Shown one piece after another: positions 1-57,228 of a stretch of 64,000 nt of DNA. The stretch comes from Hemiscyllium ocellatum (lineage: Eukaryota). Position 1 is the stretch's first letter. Every line of letters starts with the position of its first letter. Location of the stretch: positions 35,947,575 through 36,011,574 of the forward strand of contig NC_083425.1 of assembly GCF_020745735.1 (NCBI RefSeq). Reading direction: 5' to 3'. A model generated the notes under the pieces. That model was not told the origin of the DNA. It did not search any database and saw only the letters and a list, made by a program, of their open reading frames with translations. Both the position numbers and the translations under genes were made by a program.

Positions 1-700
1 ACTTACAAAATGCATTGCAGTAACTAAAGTTACTGTCCACCCAACTTTCAAACTTGTGACTCCTACTATCTAGATTGAGCAAGGCAGGTAAACAGCAAGC
101 TACACACCATCTTGACTTGGAATTACTATCACTGCTCCTTCAGTATTGCCAAGTCAAAAGCCCTGGTTTGCACAGCATTACTGTTACCATACCTTAAATC
201 ACATGGACTGCAGTAGCTCAAACAGGCAATTCACCACCACCATTTGCCATGTTTTTTTAATTAAATTCATTCAGAGTGCAGCCATCAACAGTTGAGCCAA
301 CATTCATTGCCCATCCCCAGATGGCCTTGAGAAGTTGGGGGATGAGCTGTCTTCTCAAACCACTGCAGTCCATTGGTTGTAAGTAAACCCACAATATCAT
401 GAGGGAGTGAGTTTCAGGAATTTGACCCAGCCACACTGAGGAACAGTAATGCATTTCCAAGTCAAGATGGTGAGTGGCCTGAAGGGAAGATTACAAGCAG
501 TGGTGCTCCAATGTGTCTGTTGCTTCTTCCAAATATTGGAAGGTGCTGTCCAAGACATTTTGGATGCACTTCTGCAGTGCATCATGTTGAAGGGACACAC
601 TACTGCTACTAAGCTGTGGAGGGAGTAAATTTTCTCAGTATATCAGCTGGGGAATGCATTAAAGGCTTGCTTCACCAGTGACGACAACATCCAATAAAAT
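1..700. mobile_element. Two opposed L2-like LINE 3' fragments
   Basis: 1-245 resembles 33400-33640 on the plus strand; 260-700 is the same family reversed. Confidence 0.5.
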
Positions 701-759
701 AATTTTAAGCAAGTGTATTCGTGCATCATTGCAGTAAGAATCAGTAAATAAAACAGTAA

Positions 760-1075
760 GGGCGGCACGGTGGTACAGTGGTTAGCACTGCTGCCTCACA
801 GCGCCAGAGACCCGGGTTCAATTCCCGACTCAGGCGACTGACTGTGTGGAGTTTGCACGTTCTCCCCGTGTCTGCGTGGGTTTCCTCCGGGTGCTCCGGT
901 TTCCTCCCACAGTCCAAAGATGTGCAGGTCAGGTGAATTGGCCATGCTAAATTGCCCATAGTGTTAGGTAAGGGGTAAATGTAGGGGTATGGGTGGGTTG
1001 CGCTTCGGCGGGTCGGTGTGGACTTGTTGGGCCGAAGGGCCTGTTTCCACACACTAATCTAGTAATCTAATCTAA
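760..1075 (+). mobile_element. HE1-type tRNA-derived SINE, young copy
   Basis: gggcggcacggtggtacagtggttagcactgctgcctcacagcgcc head with A/B boxes; LINE-like tail ending (CTAAT)n; CpGs intact. Confidence 0.85.
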
Positions 1076-1569
1076 AACAAATTTGCAGCAAAGAAGGAGT
1101 CCATTTGGCTCCTTGTATCAACACTAGTTGACAAGTCGCCATTGAGCCTTAGATCACTACCCAACTCTTCATCTGCCATATTGAAGATGAATAGGACTTC
1201 CAGTGCACATTCAACTGCTATTTAAATGGATAATCTCTGCTTCTTTAACACCTTCAGAGTTCCAGATTCCCACCATCTTGGGGTTAAAAGTGATTTTTAA
1301 ATCAAGTTTGACTCCTACCCTAAATGTGTCATTTGACCCTTCAGCTAAGGGGAATTTGGGCATTCTCAACTCCTCCATCCTCAGTTTTGTACAAGTCAAT
1401 CGCATCTCTCCTCCTCTGACTAGTGTTCCAAAGAGAACAAATGAATGTCAATAGACATTTTATTAGGGTAGGTAGGGCAGATGAAGAATTTAACACCAGT
1501 GTTAATTGGTGCATTGAAATGTAAACTGTTGAATCTGGCTGACTGGTGACAATTTGATGGACAAAATGG

Positions 1570-1858
1570 AGTGGCACAGTGGCTAGCACTGCTGCCTCAC
1601 AGCACAGGGTCCCTGGTTCAATTCCAGCCTCGGGTGACTGTGCAAACCCCACACACATTCTCCCCATGTCTGTGTGGGTTTCTTCCCACAGTCCAAAGAT
1701 GTGCAGGTCAGATGAATTGGCCATGCTAAAAATTGCCCATAGTGTAAGGTGCATTAGTCAGAGGGAAACGGGTCTGGGTGGGTTACTCTTTGGAGGGTCA
1801 GTGTGGACTTGTTGGGCCAAAGGGCCCATTTCCACACTGTAGGGAATCTAATCTAATC
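1570..1858 (+). mobile_element. HE1-type SINE
   Basis: Diverged copy of 760-1075. Confidence 0.8.
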
Positions 1859-1859
1859 C

Positions 1860-2745
1860 TTTAGAAGTTTGGGTTTTCAGTTTGCGTATTCGGCAGATTT
1901 TTGTATGCCTGAGGTTAATAATTAACTTAGAATTTCTGTGGCCTTGGTGATTTATTCCATAAGTGTTTCAGGCAAGGCTGCAGAGTGAATGGATTTTATG
2001 CATCACTAATTGATTCTTGTTTATCAGACTGTTTTGAAATACACCATGCAACTAATGATGCTTGCACATTAGTCAAAACACTAACGTGTTTTGGTTTGAA
2101 AAGAAAGAGCAGAAAGCAAATAGCTGAGATGGAGACATTTGGCTCCAATTTGACTTAGTGTAACAATCCAGTGAAGATGGCTGTACAGACTGGTCCTCCT
2201 GAGAAGGGAAGGAGATATTGAACTAGGCAATGTTCAAGTGAAGAGTTAGTGTTAATCCAAACTAGGTGAATGGGGGTGAAATGTCTCAAGGTTACTTAAA
2301 GCTAAGTCCATACAAACTCAGATCAAGGAAAAGAACTGGTCTCCCATTCCAATCTATTAGTTGAAATTAGAGCTGACCTAACCTGACTAAGTTCTTAGAC
2401 ACAGGAATTCAGGTGAAAAAAAGTATGGCATGAGTACTGTTTTGGGTACTATACAGTAGCTTTAAAAAGTTGAAATGAATAAAAACAGGAGTGTTCTCAG
2501 ATTATGCTTTGAGTATGTGGTTAAAAGTCTTTATTGTACAAGTAGATAGTTTGGTTTATTCAATTTCACCATTTCTATTCATAAACTTTGGTTTATTGTT
2601 AAAGCCAAAGATAAAATTTTGCACAATGTTTCAGCAAATTGATTTTGTTTTAAACAAAAAAGTGGTCATCAAAATATGATGCACCAAGCCAGATTTCAGT
2701 CTGGGATCACCAATGTCAGTAATAATGTCACCTGGGATTCTCACA
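1860..2745 (+). mobile_element. LTR-like segment (a possibly similar element lies at about 43240-43915, minus)
   Basis: Ends ctgggattctcaca, resembling shark LTR 3' ends as recalled; boundaries uncertain. Confidence 0.3.
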
Positions 2746-3715
2746 GTCAGAAGAGAAGAGTAAGGACAAACTGCACAATTCTAAACAAAAAGTCTTGAGC
2801 AAATCAGTGGTCTAAGCACAGAGAGCTGTGCATAAATTCACAAACATGACTAGCCAGGTTGAGAAAGTGTATGGAACCTATGCTTTAGAAATTAAAAAAC
2901 GGTTAAATAGGACAAAAGCAAAGAATTTGTGACAAAATGAGCCTTAAATAGAGTTGTTACTGATTTTGAAATGACAAAAGGGATCACTGAGGTCTTATGA
3001 TAAACATTTCAAGAATGACAAGCCTGTGTTGCTGAAGTCAATTGGCCAAGCTGTTATAGTTTTTAAAAGGGAAGCTTAGAAAATTTGATATTAGTGCTCT
3101 AAAACCATAACGCATCTGCACAGAATAGGTCAAGAAAAATTGGTTCCTGTTGATGAAAAGGTTGAGAAGAGATCACTAAATTAAGCTGAATGGCAAATGT
3201 TAAGGCAATGAAATAAATTATATTTGGAGCTAGAATTTGAAAGATACCGAGAACATGGTAGATTCAAATCAGAACTGCATAATCTGGAGAAAACTAAGTG
3301 AAAAAGCAGAAGTGGAGCCAACAGTATTAGACAGCCAGTACAGTCTCAGCATTCCAAATGGCTTCTTTGCTACACTCATTCTATGAGATCACTGTAGCTT
3401 AAGAGTTAGGTTAATCTTTTCTCATTCTTTTTTGGAGGATATGATCCTGTAGTTCTGAGATGATCTAGTCATTTGCCATTATCAGATAAAGAAGCAATAC
3501 TTGAATTCTGCACTGTGGGGCCCCCTTTCATTCAGCTTCTCACTGGCGAAGGGCAAAGTGTTTATTCACACCTCTTCCCCTCCACCCCATTTGTCTCTAC
3601 AATGCCCCAGTCTACTGGGGCAAGATGATTCAATTACTAATTTCAAACTTTCAAACCTAATCCTATCCTCAAATATCCTCCTACAGTTCAGTGGGCACTG
3701 GCATAATTCAACAGC

Positions 3716-3809
3716 CAGAGCTGAAAGTGTGTTGCTGGTTAAAGCACAGCAGGTTAGGCAGCATCCAAGGAACAGGAAATTCGACGTTTCGGGCCAGAGC
3801 CCTTCATCA
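3716..3809 (-). mobile_element. Penelope terminal fragment
   Basis: Same module as the 18.7-kb palindrome arm (TGATGAAGGGCTCTGGCCCGAAACGTCG on the minus strand). Confidence 0.7.
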
Positions 3810-4225
3810 CCATGCCACTGATTCTTATCCTTTACCTTGACAGCCCCTTGAAAATTTGACAATATCTTGTTCACTGCTCAGGCTGTCATTTGTAAAGCTT
3901 GAAATTAAAACAAAGAGCAGATCATTAATGTATGGAAGACAATTGACATCCTAATAATCATAACCAGGGATGAATGAATACTTCCCTCAAGTGTATGGAA
4001 ACAGCACATTTGCTATTTCTCTCCACTGTCCTTTTGCCAATTTCAGACACATGCCGCCAAAGTCCCTTCAATGCCACTAGTTTCAATTTTGTTCACAATT
4101 TATCCATATACTTATCAAATACTTTTGACATTTCGACAACCAAAATATTGACAACCTTCAATGTTACTTAAAATGAACTCAAAAGCTACTCAAATAACTT
4201 GTTTAAAAGCAAATTAAATGCTAGC

Positions 4226-8490: not shown

Positions 8491-9638
8491 AACACACCGA
8501 ATATCCACGCCAACCGTCCCTCTTGCTGAACATGTGTCTATACGAAAAGGTAGACAGCGACAATGGTGACGCTGAGTATCCATAATGCATGGCGCCAAGG
8601 AAAGTACTGTATTAATTACTGATACAGACCGCGCATGCTCATATGTCTTCTGAGGTTTCTGAGCTGCTGCAGTGAAAAGGAAAGTGTTGTTTTGAGAATA
8701 GCAGGGATATCTGGAAAACCAGCACGAGGAACTTACATTGGTGCCATGAATCTTTCCTCTGGTACTGCATTGCACAGGCCATTGCAAGCAACACTACTGT
8801 CTAATCATCCCTTTCAATCATTCCAGAGAATTGCTAATTATCAATAAATAATCCTTAATGCAGACGTCCGTGACTCGAAGACAGCTTTACCTTTCGCTCA
8901 AATGTTGATGCGGAACACCAGTTGAGGGAAATCTTGAGGGGGTAAGCAGTCCACTGGTTAAAGTCAACTCTAGCACTAAAGAAGCTAAAAACCGAAACAA
9001 CTTGGATGAGTGTATGAATAGCAAGGGTTTAGAGGGATACGGGCCAAATGTTGGCAAACAGGGCTAGATTAATTTAGAAAGTCTGTTCGGCATGGACAAG
9101 CTGGACCGAAGGGTCTGTTTCCATGCTGCATATCTATATTACTCCTATAGCTGCAGATGCTGGAAATCAGAAATAGAAAAAGAATTTTGCTGGTAAAGCT
9201 CAACAGATCTGGCAGCATCTAAGGAGAAAAGTCAGAGTTAACGTTTCAGGTGTACTGACATCGCAGAACACTAATAAAGATATTTATGGTGTTTGCAGCC
9301 AATTATCCCAAGTACGAGCACTTAGTTGCAGGTGTTCCTCAGAATGATGTCCTCAGCCCACCTACTTCCAATCATAAAGTTAGAAGTGTCAATGGTCTCT
9401 GATGATTGCACAATGTTCAATACCAAGCACAATTCCTCAGGTCACTAAATTAAAACAAGATGTGAGTAACATTCCATCTTGTGCTAACAAGTGACTTCAC
9501 ACAACACAAAACCAGACAATAAGCTTTTTCAACACTCGAGAATCTAATCATGATCTCTTGACATTCAATGGTATTCCCCATTATCAGCATAGTTGGTTCT
9601 CCGCTGAAGAAAAATAATCAGAACATGTGTAGTTTCTG

Positions 9639-9689
9639 AAACTTACCTGGCAGGGAAGATATCTTGATCTCGAAGGTGGATCCACCAGG
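9639..9689 (+). pseudogene. U1 snRNA 5' fragment (nt 1-51), head of a Tx1-type chimera
   Basis: ACTTACCTGGCAGGGAAGATATCTTGATCTCGAAGGTGG; 36/41 and 42/51 ungapped identity to vertebrate U1 as recalled; stem-loops II-IV and the Sm site are absent. Confidence 0.85.
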
Positions 9690-9879
9690 ACTGGTCTGAG
9701 CTGACAAACTTCATAATCAGAAGATTTTCAGATCATCGCTGGATTGTGATTGCAAACAGAACTTGGAGGATCATTGGTTGAGCTGAACTGCAATTGATGG
9801 ATCTTTTTGCTGGCTCTGCCCTAACGCCAATTCAGTGACCAGCCAACCAGAGCCATCGCCTCTGCTAGTGTATGTGCCC

Positions 9880-12335
9880 ATGACCAGGAGAGGCTGAACC
9901 AGCCATTATCTCTCGATGAGCTAACCAAGGCCATCGGGTCCTTAGAAAAGAATAAAACTCCCAGAAGTGATGGCTTACCAAGTTGTATTCAGCTCTGTGG
10001 GACTTAATTGGCCAGGACATGCTGGAGGTGTATGATAGTAGGCTTCTGGTAGGAAGCACGTGCCAATCCATGAGGAAAAGTATCATCACTCTCATTGCCA
10101 CACGGAAGGGGAGAGGAAAGAAATAAAAATTGGTGATCAGTTTCATTGTGGATTGCAGTCCAAAAAATTCTGTCTAAGATCATCGCCAACTGGAGCAGGT
10201 CTTCTCTGGGATCGGTGATTCACCCCAACCAGGACACGATGTATAAGACTTACATATACAAGACTATATTTACATATATTTGAGGCATCGGGAGAGACGA
10301 ATACCTGAAAGGACCCGCATTTAACTTTGACAGAAAAACCTGTCGTTCCCCACTGTGTCTTTGCAGTAGCTGCCCCATAGTCCTGGACCTCGGAACTTGT
10401 CAGTCTCTAACACTGGGTTAAGGTTAATTCCTTGCTCTGGAAGATGAAAAAGTTTTGGAAATACCAAAGAGCATCTTTCACTGCATTGGATGGGCAGGAT
10501 GATCTCTGAAAGCCTTGCATTCCTCAGGGATATATTCCCCTATGTTCAGGGCTCAGGGTGTGGACACCTCCCTCATCAGCCTGCACCAGGAAAAAACCTT
10601 TGACTGGACATTGCACATCCACTTGTGGGATGTGTTCTCCAAAATGGACTTTGGGGAGGGAATCTGCAATTTATCCAACTGCTCTACATCAACACTGTTA
10701 GTGCAGTCACAATCAATGGTGGGAATTATAAAGCTTCCAATCAGATCTGGAGGCAGACAGGGCTGCCCATCCTCTCCTGCCTTGTTTGCGTGTTGTATAG
10801 AGCACTTTACTGAGTCCATCAGGAAGGATGAGAGCATGAAGGGGGTGTCTATTCCAGGCAGAGGCTTGCAGGTCAAAGTCTCCCTGTACATGGATGATGT
10901 TACCATTTTTTGCTTGGACCAGTTGTCAGGGCATGGACTCATGAGCATCTGCAATCAGTTTGAACTGGCCTCAGGAAGCCAAGGTAAATCAAGGCAAGTG
11001 CGAGGCCATGTTTTTTGGGAACTGGGCTGACCAATCCTTTATCCCCTTTGAGGTAAAGACATTTTATCTGAAGATGCTGGAAATATGGGTTTGGAGGGAC
11101 TATGTTATACACAAAATCTTGGGGAGCAGTGCATCACTAAGGTGAGGCAGAAACTGAGCTTTTGACACAGGTCTGGCTCATTTCCTGAACCTGCATTGTT
11201 GCAGTCACCCAAGCCATCTTCCACTTCAATTGAAAGTCTAAGATGGACAGTGACCACAGGATCACCATGAATAAAGCTCTGGATTCTACGATTCAATGAA
11301 AAGATGCTACCCTCATTCTGATGGTCATCTGTGTATGGCTGCATTAAGCTGTAGAGCCTCGGTACACAAATACGAAGTGTCATAGCATATGGAGGGTCTA
11401 CCTGTGAAGGATAGGATTGGCCTTGTTGCCTTTGAACAGTCCAAGTATTTGGACCATTCTGAATCACCTGTCCTTCATGGAAATATTAGCAAAGAGAAAA
11501 CATCTTTGAGCATCAGACAGTGGACAGCACATAGTATCCTTGAGAATCTGTGGGAAAAGGAGAGGGTGCATCGTGTCAAATTGTTCCCTGAGCAAACTGT
11601 CAAAGTCATTTGGCAAAATTCCTCATCATCAAAACATTTCACCAAGCACCAAGATGTCATTTGGCCAGTGGTGAGAAGGGCATTACCTGTGAGATTCTTT
11701 TTGTACACGCAGATTCTCTACGCCATTGCATGTTGCCCTCAAAGTGGCTGTGGCTGGGTAGAAACTGTTACAAATGTCCATTTGGAATGTGCCTTTGCAA
11801 AGAAAGTCTAGAAAAAGGTGCAGTGATTTTTGGTGTGGTTCATCCCAAGCAGCTCTGTGATGCAGCACTCTTTGCTCTCTGGTCTGTTCCTCAGGATGCA
11901 GATCAAGACAAACACCAACTGTGCCTGAAAGACAATCAGGTGAAAAACACTCTATGGTATACCCAAAACTTGTTGGTCTTCCAGCGCAAAGAATTGACCT
12001 CAACCAAGTCTTGCAGACTGACAAATTCCAAGGGCCAGGACTACATACTGAAGCTGGGGCACCTGCTGGCAAGGCACAGTGGGGAAAAACAGGTTTTCTG
12101 TCAAGTTAAATGGGGTCTGTTCAGTTATTGGAACCTCCTGAGGCCTCAAATAGTGGTAAATACAGCCTTGTACAACTAAACATGCCTTTGATCTGTTTGC
12201 TGGATAGATTCAAATGCCAATGTTTTGTTTGTTTCTTTTAACGCTACTATTCAGAACCAAGCTGCTATAGTGACTATGTATCAATACAAAGTTATTTTGA
12301 TGACTCAAGTATATTTTAGAAATTTTAAAAAATGT
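9880..12335 (+). mobile_element. Degenerate Tx1/L1-clade non-LTR retrotransposon ORF2 (RT plus C-terminal zinc finger) and 3' UTR
   Basis: Frameshifted motifs KNKTPRSDGL, SLHQEKTFD, RQGCPSSPALF, YMDD and CP..C..ETVTNVHLEC; AT-rich tail at about 12300-12335. Confidence 0.9.
10235..10492 (-). mobile_element. Inverted Tx1 3'-end fragment inside the Tx1 RT region
   Basis: Reverse complement aligns by eye with 11935-12180; RT reading stops at VIHPNQ and resumes at GRMISESL on either side. Confidence 0.75.
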
Positions 12336-12336
12336 T

Positions 12337-12545
12337 CATTCCAAGGTCCAAGACTATGTGCTGAGATGCACCAAAGCTTGGGGCAGGTACTGACAAGGCG
12401 CATTGGGGAAGTCTACCATCTAGGGTTTTTCTCAAGTCAAATTGACATCTGTTCAATTATTGGACCTTTCTGGTGCCTCAAATGCATGAAAATATAGTCC
12501 TGCGTAAGTAAGAAATGCCTTGGGTTTGTTTGTTCTATATACGTA
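12337..12545 (+). mobile_element. Tandem extra Tx1 3'-end fragment
   Basis: cattccaaggtccaagactatgtgctga...gcctcaaat aligns with 12025-12205. Confidence 0.75.
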
Positions 12546-13610
12546 TAGTCCGTACCCCTCCACATTCAACACTCCCTAACTTCAAACTAATGTAATCTTT
12601 GTTTGACAGCAGCTATCTCAGTGGCTGTCAGAACATTTATATTTCAGAGCAGGGCAGTTGATGCCTATGTAAAGGGCTGTGGCTTTTCACTTCAGTTGGC
12701 TCCATATCTCTGAAGAAGACCTGATCAGTATCGCCTTTCACAAATGTGGAACTCAATCCTTTCATCGAACAAAGGGCAGGAGTTGCAGTCTGAGAGATTA
12801 TCACTCATTGGAAAAATCCAGCCTACAGTTTCTAATACTGAAATTTGATGAAAGGCTACAGATCTGAATTGTTAATACCGTTCCTTTTCTGACAGATACT
12901 GCCAGACCTGCAAGGTATTTCTAGTATTTTCTGTTTTTACTTCAGATTTTTAGCATCCATTTAGATTTATTTCAGTTCCTAAATCTAGTTTTGCTACATC
13001 TTATGACTACTTTCCTTGTCAGCAGTTCTCTCGTCTTCCACTTACTATTTTAGAACATCCTTTGGACACAAGCCAGCTCATCTGCTTTAATTTGAATTAT
13101 TTTATTCTGTCCCATCAGCTTTCTGACTTTATCACTAATCTCAGCCTATGATACTATATGTTTTGTATTCTAATTTCTGCTCAATCTCACAAAGTTTATT
13201 AATGTCTGCTCTACACTTCTGTCCCAGCAGTTTTTCTTTACATTTTATTTTCTGTGTTGATCACAGAATGATAAAAGCTTTCCAATTCAGCAGTTTAATT
13301 TGCTTTTCCTTCTGGAGCCTTTTAAAATATTCTGATATTTCTAAACAAAAAGATATGATGTTGAAGCTTTTCACCTTGCACTCATCAGGACAGATTAAGA
13401 ATACTAAATTTCAGAGGAAGCAACAACTTATATTGCATGTGTTAAAGGTGCTGATTGTTATGGCTCACCGTAAGCATATTTATATACATTTAAGTGCATA
13501 CATCATCAAGCATGTGACCTAAGGCTATGAAGACCTCATACTCCAACTTAATTTGGATAATTTAAAGCATGAAACTGTACGATAATCATGCTTCTAAATT
13601 AATGTGATTA

Positions 13611-14683: not shown

Positions 14684-57228
<42,545 letters not shown>

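Follow-up and report, generated by a model that had tools for sequence, protein, structure and literature searches.

A U1 snRNA head on a Tx1 retrotransposon relic in a shark and its relation to Tx1 elements in U1 genes

We describe a relic of a Tx1 retrotransposon in the genome of the shark Hemiscyllium ocellatum that begins with the 5' part of U1 small nuclear RNA (snRNA). The relic lies in a 64,000-nucleotide (nt) stretch of NC_083425.1 (35,947,575–36,011,574), hereafter the window, to which all coordinates refer. Its head consists of U1 nt 1–51, the same piece that stands upstream of Tx1 elements residing in U1 genes, and is, therefore, probably a souvenir of a U1-resident parent and not a chance neighbor. 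On balance, we lean toward a U1 target site as the source: its upstream half would have been co-transcribed from the U1 promoter and carried off-target as the head. U1-headed Tx1 elements are already known from crocodilians, and the window copy is a shark example. A Tx1 lineage specific to U1 genes appears to be unreported. The origin and transcription of snRNA heads of the RNA polymerase II (Pol II) type on retroposons were left open when the SINEU retroposons were described.

The U1-headed relic and its age

The head occupies 9639..9689 on the forward strand and comprises the 5' splice-site arm and stem-loop I, with a final CCAGG (U1 nt 47–51) at which the likeness to U1 ends. Searching 9620–9700 with the Rfam U1 model returned a 3'-truncated match at 9639–9700 to model positions 1–62 (26.9 bits, E = 9.7e-6), and forced global alignment of the head region gave 19.7 bits. 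The gathering score of the model is 69.5, and a whole-window scan, therefore, missed the head. The original prediction for this locus had reported a head starting at U1 nt 1–3 with 42 matches in 51 positions; the same count was obtained against the fish-like 5' part of a U1 gene on the metagenomic contig L007, described below. An exact 15-mer of the head, ACTTACCTGGCAGGG, occurs in the window only at 9641–9655. Position 9684 is a C in organisms B and C, indicating that the ancestral head ended in CCCAGG, as in U1. Features of a full-length U1 gene (Sm site and stem-loops II–IV) were not found at the locus, model positions 1–62 alone being matched.

No snRNA promoter context precedes the head. 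Instead, U1 nt 1 at 9639 directly abuts the relic of another long interspersed nuclear element (LINE), such that the U1-derived sequence forms the 5' terminus of the retrocopy. This flanking relic (9259..9638, forward strand), which hosts the insertion, was recognized by GVPQ, DDCTMF and LTFNG motifs in its translated reverse transcriptase (RT) and belongs to what we take to be a CR1/L2-like element. A paralogous copy at 32990–33030 of the window is 83% identical to its positions 9541–9582.

Downstream of the head, a linker of ~140 nt (9690..9830, forward strand) matches nothing tested. The linker alone (9686–9870) gave no match to the Rfam U1 model even at an E value of 10, in line with the predicted abrupt end of the U1 likeness; on this ground, the linker was rejected as the remainder of U1, for which the forced global alignment had hinted at an Sm-site remnant. 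It was also rejected as part of the second open reading frame (ORF2) of the element: a sub-profile hidden Markov model (HMM) compared against shuffled sequences gave p = 0.74, frameshift-aware alignment to whale-shark relatives gave p = 0.13 and 0.70, and matches noticed by eye (DLFA to FY..LF and KIFRSS to KIIFRSR) contradicted each other and failed the shuffle tests. No homology to ORF1 and no similarity to the 5' untranslated region (UTR) of the U1-site element on L007 (p = 0.2) were detected, matches to ORF1, the endonuclease or this 5' UTR staying at chance level, and no second copy of the linker exists within the window. The N terminus of a whale-shark gene model (P0057), LTFLARYVQLEGGSS, resembles the translated head. 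We consider this to be chance, as the sequence lies inside an ORF1 RBD_ZCCHC3_2nd domain (E = 4e-11) and is common to no other protein.

The linker is followed on the same strand by a relic of ORF2 in two parts. Part 1 (9831..10237, forward strand; identified by tblastn and HMM) begins just upstream of the RT domain and extends into it. Here, tblastn with two whale-shark relatives (P0022 and P0001) traced ORF2 homology back to 9831–9840, which shortens the unassigned interval from the ~190 nt initially estimated to ~140 nt, and HMM positions 431–554 align to 9864–10232, with several stops and frameshifts. Part 2 (10478..12179, forward strand) contains the RT core with its YMDD motif and the C-terminal zinc-binding region and ends in a stop codon at 12177–12179. 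RVT_1 was detected at 10503–11027 (E = 1e-10) and zf-RVT, weakly, at 11386–11808 (E = 0.017). In total, an HMM built from 32 full-length relatives is covered from position 431 to 1117 of 1150 over 9864–12050 in three reading frames, with positions 580–1117 falling in part 2, and tblastn with P0035 matched the relic up to residue 1155 of 1161.

ORF1 and the endonuclease are absent from the copy, as had been noted from the sequence alone, with ORF2 homology starting at profile position 431 of 1150. Both are present in the full-length relatives, as an Exo_endo_phos domain and as an ORF1 containing RBD_ZCCHC3 domains; the window copy is a truncated or deleted Tx1 member and no counter-example to the features of the group. 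With its ORF2 full of stops and frameshifts, it is dead, without function and an ordinary relic.

Logan contigs, whose depth is no measure of copy number, were compared with the window. In a second sample of the same species, contigs match 9191–9970 without difference. Contigs from two related species span 9223–9786 and 9110–9786, each differing from the window by ~4–5%. As contigs of three species thus span the junction between flank and U1, the fusion is real and older than their split.

Tx1 relatives in snRNA genes and known U1-headed elements

The best protein matches to the window ORF2 are EukProt gene models of Rhincodon typus, with 50–53% identity. In an RT tree computed from a 175-residue piece in 94 rows and built without Repbase reference sequences, the window copy groups with whale-shark copies (SH-aLRT 99). 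Its sister clade (support 96) consists of P0151, P0161 and a Pleurodeles protein. A larger clade of 39 rows (support 93) encloses both of these groups, a lineage inserted at U1 sites and a second U2-site lineage and also includes a zebrafish protein named ‘transposon TX1 149 kDa protein’. Judged from these sequence relationships, the predicted assignment of the window ORF2 to the Tx1 group holds, and its lineage is placed in the tree among residents of snRNA genes that surround it.

The closest full-length relative of the window ORF2, P0151, is a Keno-like element located in U2 genes. Contig L002 (1–110) starts with two extra bases, followed by U2 nt 1–28, a short 5' UTR and then the P0151 ORF1. 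On contig L006 (3800–3896), the P0151 tail and nine A residues are joined to U2 from ~nt 39. Of the three P0151 contigs reaching the 5' end of the element, none passes U2 nt 1 on the upstream side by more than two bases, and these starts fit transcripts begun at the U2 start site.

Elements residing in U1 genes were found in the same broader Tx1 clade, on the marine-metagenome contigs L007/L008/L009, L012 and L013. L007 contains a U2–U1–U6–U5 gene cluster. A Keno-like element at its beginning (1–3900), with tail and poly(A), is joined to U2 at ~nt 39, and a second element (L007:4330–9764), which encodes P0171, lies inside the U1 gene in the order U1 nt 1–51, 134-nt 5' UTR, ORF1, ORF2, tail and U1 nt 38–164. 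Its target-site duplication (TSD) of 14 bp corresponds to U1 nt 38–51. The element at L013:175–5545 has U1 nt 1–51/52 in front and U1 from ~nt 39 behind, and that at L012:98–5543 has U1 nt 1–38 in front and U1 from ~nt 40 behind. Together, these represent three distinct full-length Tx1 families of one clade in U1 genes, with 3' junctions at U1 nt 38–41 and, in two of the three, a TSD of U1 nt 38–51 (5' junction at nt 51/52). They have a common 5' UTR motif, GCAGTCGTGCGGTGTATGGGGCGC, which the window lacks. L007 and L013 show all features of a U1-site insertion, whereas the window copy has upstream U1 only and none after its tail; relative to it, the U1-resident elements are full-length and intact with U1 on both flanks, share ~35% RT identity and carry the same upstream U1 piece, nt 1–51. 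A U1-specific non-LTR (long terminal repeat) Tx1 lineage was not found described in the open-access literature, Repbase aside, and the elements given by Kojima and Jurka (2015) as targeting snRNA genes are limited to Keno, Utopia, Dada-U1 and Dada-U6.

An AAAC(AT)GCCT-like motif with short tandem repeats behind it is present in the window tail (12190–12242), at L007:9600–9636 and at the 3' end of L013. It may represent a common 3' recognition feature of this Tx1 clade.

Heads of the kind seen in the window were described in crocodilians, where Tx1-Mar families with U1 or U2 heads, placed beside Keno, occur together with SINEU retroposons (Kojima 2015, PMC4494074). Similar U1 heads are known for Tx1-2_Crp and Tx1-4_AMi (PMC4494074), and Tx1-2_Crp, Tx1-2B_Crp and Tx1-4_AMi resemble the window copy in being Tx1 elements with a U1 head of ~50 nt outside U1 genes. 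The boundary between the U1 and U2 parts of SINEU-2 lies at consensus positions 53–58 (CAGGTG), approximately where the window head ends (PMC4494074). Compared to these families, the window contains a single decayed shark copy that lacks ORF1, endonuclease and poly(A) and is inserted in a CR1-like LINE rather than in Mariner, a distinction drawn from Kojima (2015). With respect to Keno, the U2-specific Tx1-clade LINE of Kojima and Fujiwara (2004), P0151 shows the arrangement as it is cited in PMC4494074 and PMC4640811, while the window copy carries U1 instead of U2 and lies outside any snRNA gene. Mammalian chimeras between snRNA and L1 made by template switching (Buzdin 2002 and Garcia-Perez 2007, both after PMC4494074) likewise combine a 5' snRNA part with a 5'-truncated LINE; these usually reach to or near the 3' end of the snRNA, while the window U1 stops at nt 51, the Tx1 target junction.

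Origin of the head

The three origins proposed at the outset were membership in a shark family of U1-headed Tx1 elements, a template-switch chimera and a read-through product of a Tx1 located in a U1 gene. The last gains most from the U1-resident relatives, which have U1 nt 1–51 upstream, and template switching remains the main rival. In the scenario that we favor, a Tx1 element, or a derivative of one with an internal deletion or a 5' truncation, would have resided in a U1 gene at the U1-specific Tx1 site, with cleavage of the bottom strand before U1 nt 38 and of the top strand after nt 51. The upstream Pol II promoter of the U1 gene would have generated an RNA containing U1 nt 1–51 plus the element, and the Tx1 machinery would have reverse-transcribed this entire RNA into an off-target site, the CR1-like LINE relic. 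The resulting copy would start at U1 nt 1, with no U1 promoter before it and no U1 3' half after it, and would later have decayed, been hit by another tail fragment and been inherited by three species. A U1-resident parent of this lineage would thus have existed in a shark and been transcribed from the U1 promoter, and the 140-nt linker would be the 5' UTR of that element or a deletion product.

Several observations point in this direction. The head starts at U1 nt 1, right against LINE sequence unrelated to it, and its end at nt 51 is that of the upstream U1 piece of the L007 and L013 elements. If end-points were uniform along U1, the chance of a head ending within 2 nt of position 51 would be ~3%. 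Additionally, we count in favor of co-transcription the snRNA heads and sites around the window lineage together with the P0151 contigs that pass U2 nt 1 by no more than 2 nt, as well as the U1 heads of crocodilian Tx1 elements.

Several observations weigh against this scenario. Neither the window nor the contigs matching position 9684 at 80% likeness yielded a second head–linker junction, the only contig at that position being the one of the locus itself, although this copy test has low power, since genuine ORF2 stretches (for example, 11278–11411) are nearly as unique. A shark family of U1-headed Tx1 elements is, at present, unproven. The library type behind the Logan contigs is not known, so that co-transcription is not directly shown. 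The window ORF2 is more similar to the U2-site P0151 (40% identity) than to the U1-site P0171 (34.6%). Because the linker is unlike the U1-site 5' UTR, ORF1 and ORF2, a large internal deletion or a different 5' UTR must be assumed. TSDs around the element have no statistical support. Lastly, Kojima (2015, PMC4494074) preferred template switching for the crocodilian heads.

Template switching would mean that the RT stopped within a Tx1 RNA, jumped to a whole or fragmentary U1 snRNA and copied this to the capped 5' end, a one-off event like that of mammalian U6/L1 chimeras. A start at U1 nt 1 joined to a Tx1 without ORF1 and endonuclease is the usual anatomy of such chimeras, no other junction copy was seen, and there is precedent: Kojima (2015, PMC4494074) invoked the process for repeated U1/U2 5' additions to SINEU and also for 5' extensions with 3' truncation points as much as 22 nt apart. 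Jumps, however, normally reach the acceptor RNA at its 3' end, whereas U1 is cut here at nt 51, which is the 5' junction of U1-resident Tx1 elements. Furthermore, the ~140 nt between head and ORF2 are not detectably ORF2, which speaks against a simple join of U1 to a truncated ORF2. Template switching predicts neither the end-point at nt 51 nor a non-ORF2 linker, and we consider it rather unlikely.

The head could alternatively have been present before the element, as a short U1 retropseudogene in the CR1-like relic into which a U1-specific Tx1 inserted at nt 38–51, the downstream U1 part having been lost or decayed. This would explain the head end at nt 51 as well as co-transcription from a U1 gene does, and a GCTGGAT directly after the common tail matches GGTGGAT (U1 nt 37–43 as in the head) at six of seven positions. 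Neither a U1 3' part nor a copy of the 14-bp TSD is recognizable behind the tail, though, the 36 nt that follow it look as if the end of the element itself had been repeated in tandem, and two independent events plus a deletion are required; we regard this course of events as improbable. Least probable of all is that a U1 pseudogene truncated at its 3' end and a Tx1 remnant unrelated to it lie side by side by chance, for which one could cite a genome full of nested repeats with three Tx1 tails within 2.3 kb, the 5-nt direct repeat TCTGA around the head (9634–9638 and 9694–9698) and an unassigned linker, but that repeat is within chance, head and element have the same strand and the order expected of one RNA, the head end coincides with a Tx1 target junction, and Tx1 elements of this clade bear snRNA heads repeatedly (this analysis; PMC4494074).

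A head whose end coincides with the junction used by Tx1 residents of U1 genes points to a promoter borrowed from the target gene, with the head as a footprint of residence. Our data also suggest a LINE lineage dedicated to U1 genes, as there is for U2 genes. More tentatively, it is possible that snRNA heads on Tx1 and SINEU are co-transcribed target-site halves and not random template switches, that an undescribed U1-specific Tx1 lineage (nt 38–51) of fishes, perhaps including sharks, was the source of U1 1–51 heads from sharks to crocodilians, and that the window copy is its off-target escapee. The value of this copy would be that of a dated fossil of head acquisition in cartilaginous fishes, and the locus and its relatives together offer a testable origin for snRNA heads.

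Element tail and surrounding repeats

The element ends in a short 3' UTR and a tail without poly(A) (12180..12242, forward strand), the last ~25 nt of which are present twice in tandem according to the tail alignment. A three-way alignment with two further tails, denoted B and C, showed that the common sequence ends near 12205, after which the tail of the U1-headed element (copy A) repeats an ATGCC..TGTTTG motif to ~12242. A 3' UTR had been anticipated correctly, whereas the A-rich tail and an element end at 12335 had not: the A-rich run (12320–12335) lies outside the element, whose end falls between 12205 and 12242. As also anticipated, Rfam scans of the window recognized no U1 3' half downstream of the tail.

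The interval 12243..12337 (unstranded), which holds the A-rich run, probably represents the flanking CR1-like relic resuming. Its positions 12243–12288 align weakly with the paralog at 33056–33100, including the 10-mer TATCAATACA (p ~ 0.1 against shuffles). The CR1-like relic has clearly resumed at 12592..12718 (forward strand), on the basis of a local alignment to the paralog at 33143–33257. A candidate TSD of ~27 nt formed by AATCAGAAC (9612–9638) and ATTCAGAAC (from 12250) fits the paralog in position and was discarded as not significant (p = 0.37 and 0.1).

Copy B, a nested, inverted and 5'-truncated 3'-end fragment of a related element (10238..10477, reverse strand), splits ORF2 after VIHPNQDT. 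Positions 10257–10481 are 76.7% identical, in inverted orientation, to 11940–12172 in the 3' end of copy A, and 10231–10494 is missing from a few contigs that represent other copies of the family. Copy C (12338..12535, forward strand) is a third, direct and 5'-truncated 3'-end fragment of a related element, with 68% identity to 12025–12206, and represents a separate insertion. Thus, three Tx1 3' ends of one kind occur within 2.3 kb (10238–10477, 11940–12242 and 12338–12535) and nowhere else in the 64 kb. The insertions of copies A and C lie ~100 nt apart in the same CR1-like relic, an observation from one window only that is suggestive but not significant; their proximity may reflect a landing-site preference or chance.

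Upstream of the hosting relic, a repeat of extreme abundance has its 3' end at 9000–9267, with a summed contig depth of ~1 million in all four runs, and loose contig ends from this repeat run into TATGACTCTA-type tandem repeats. Elsewhere in the window, a full-length yet weak match to the U6 model at 22711–22819 on the reverse strand (22.6 bits) falls within another LINE, in its 3' part, and was judged to be chance. A long, near-perfect hairpin at 41213–41396 matches the plant-type microRNA precursor models MIR821 and MIR6135 weakly on both strands (E ~ 1e-7, far below gathering) and is most likely an inverted-repeat transposon.

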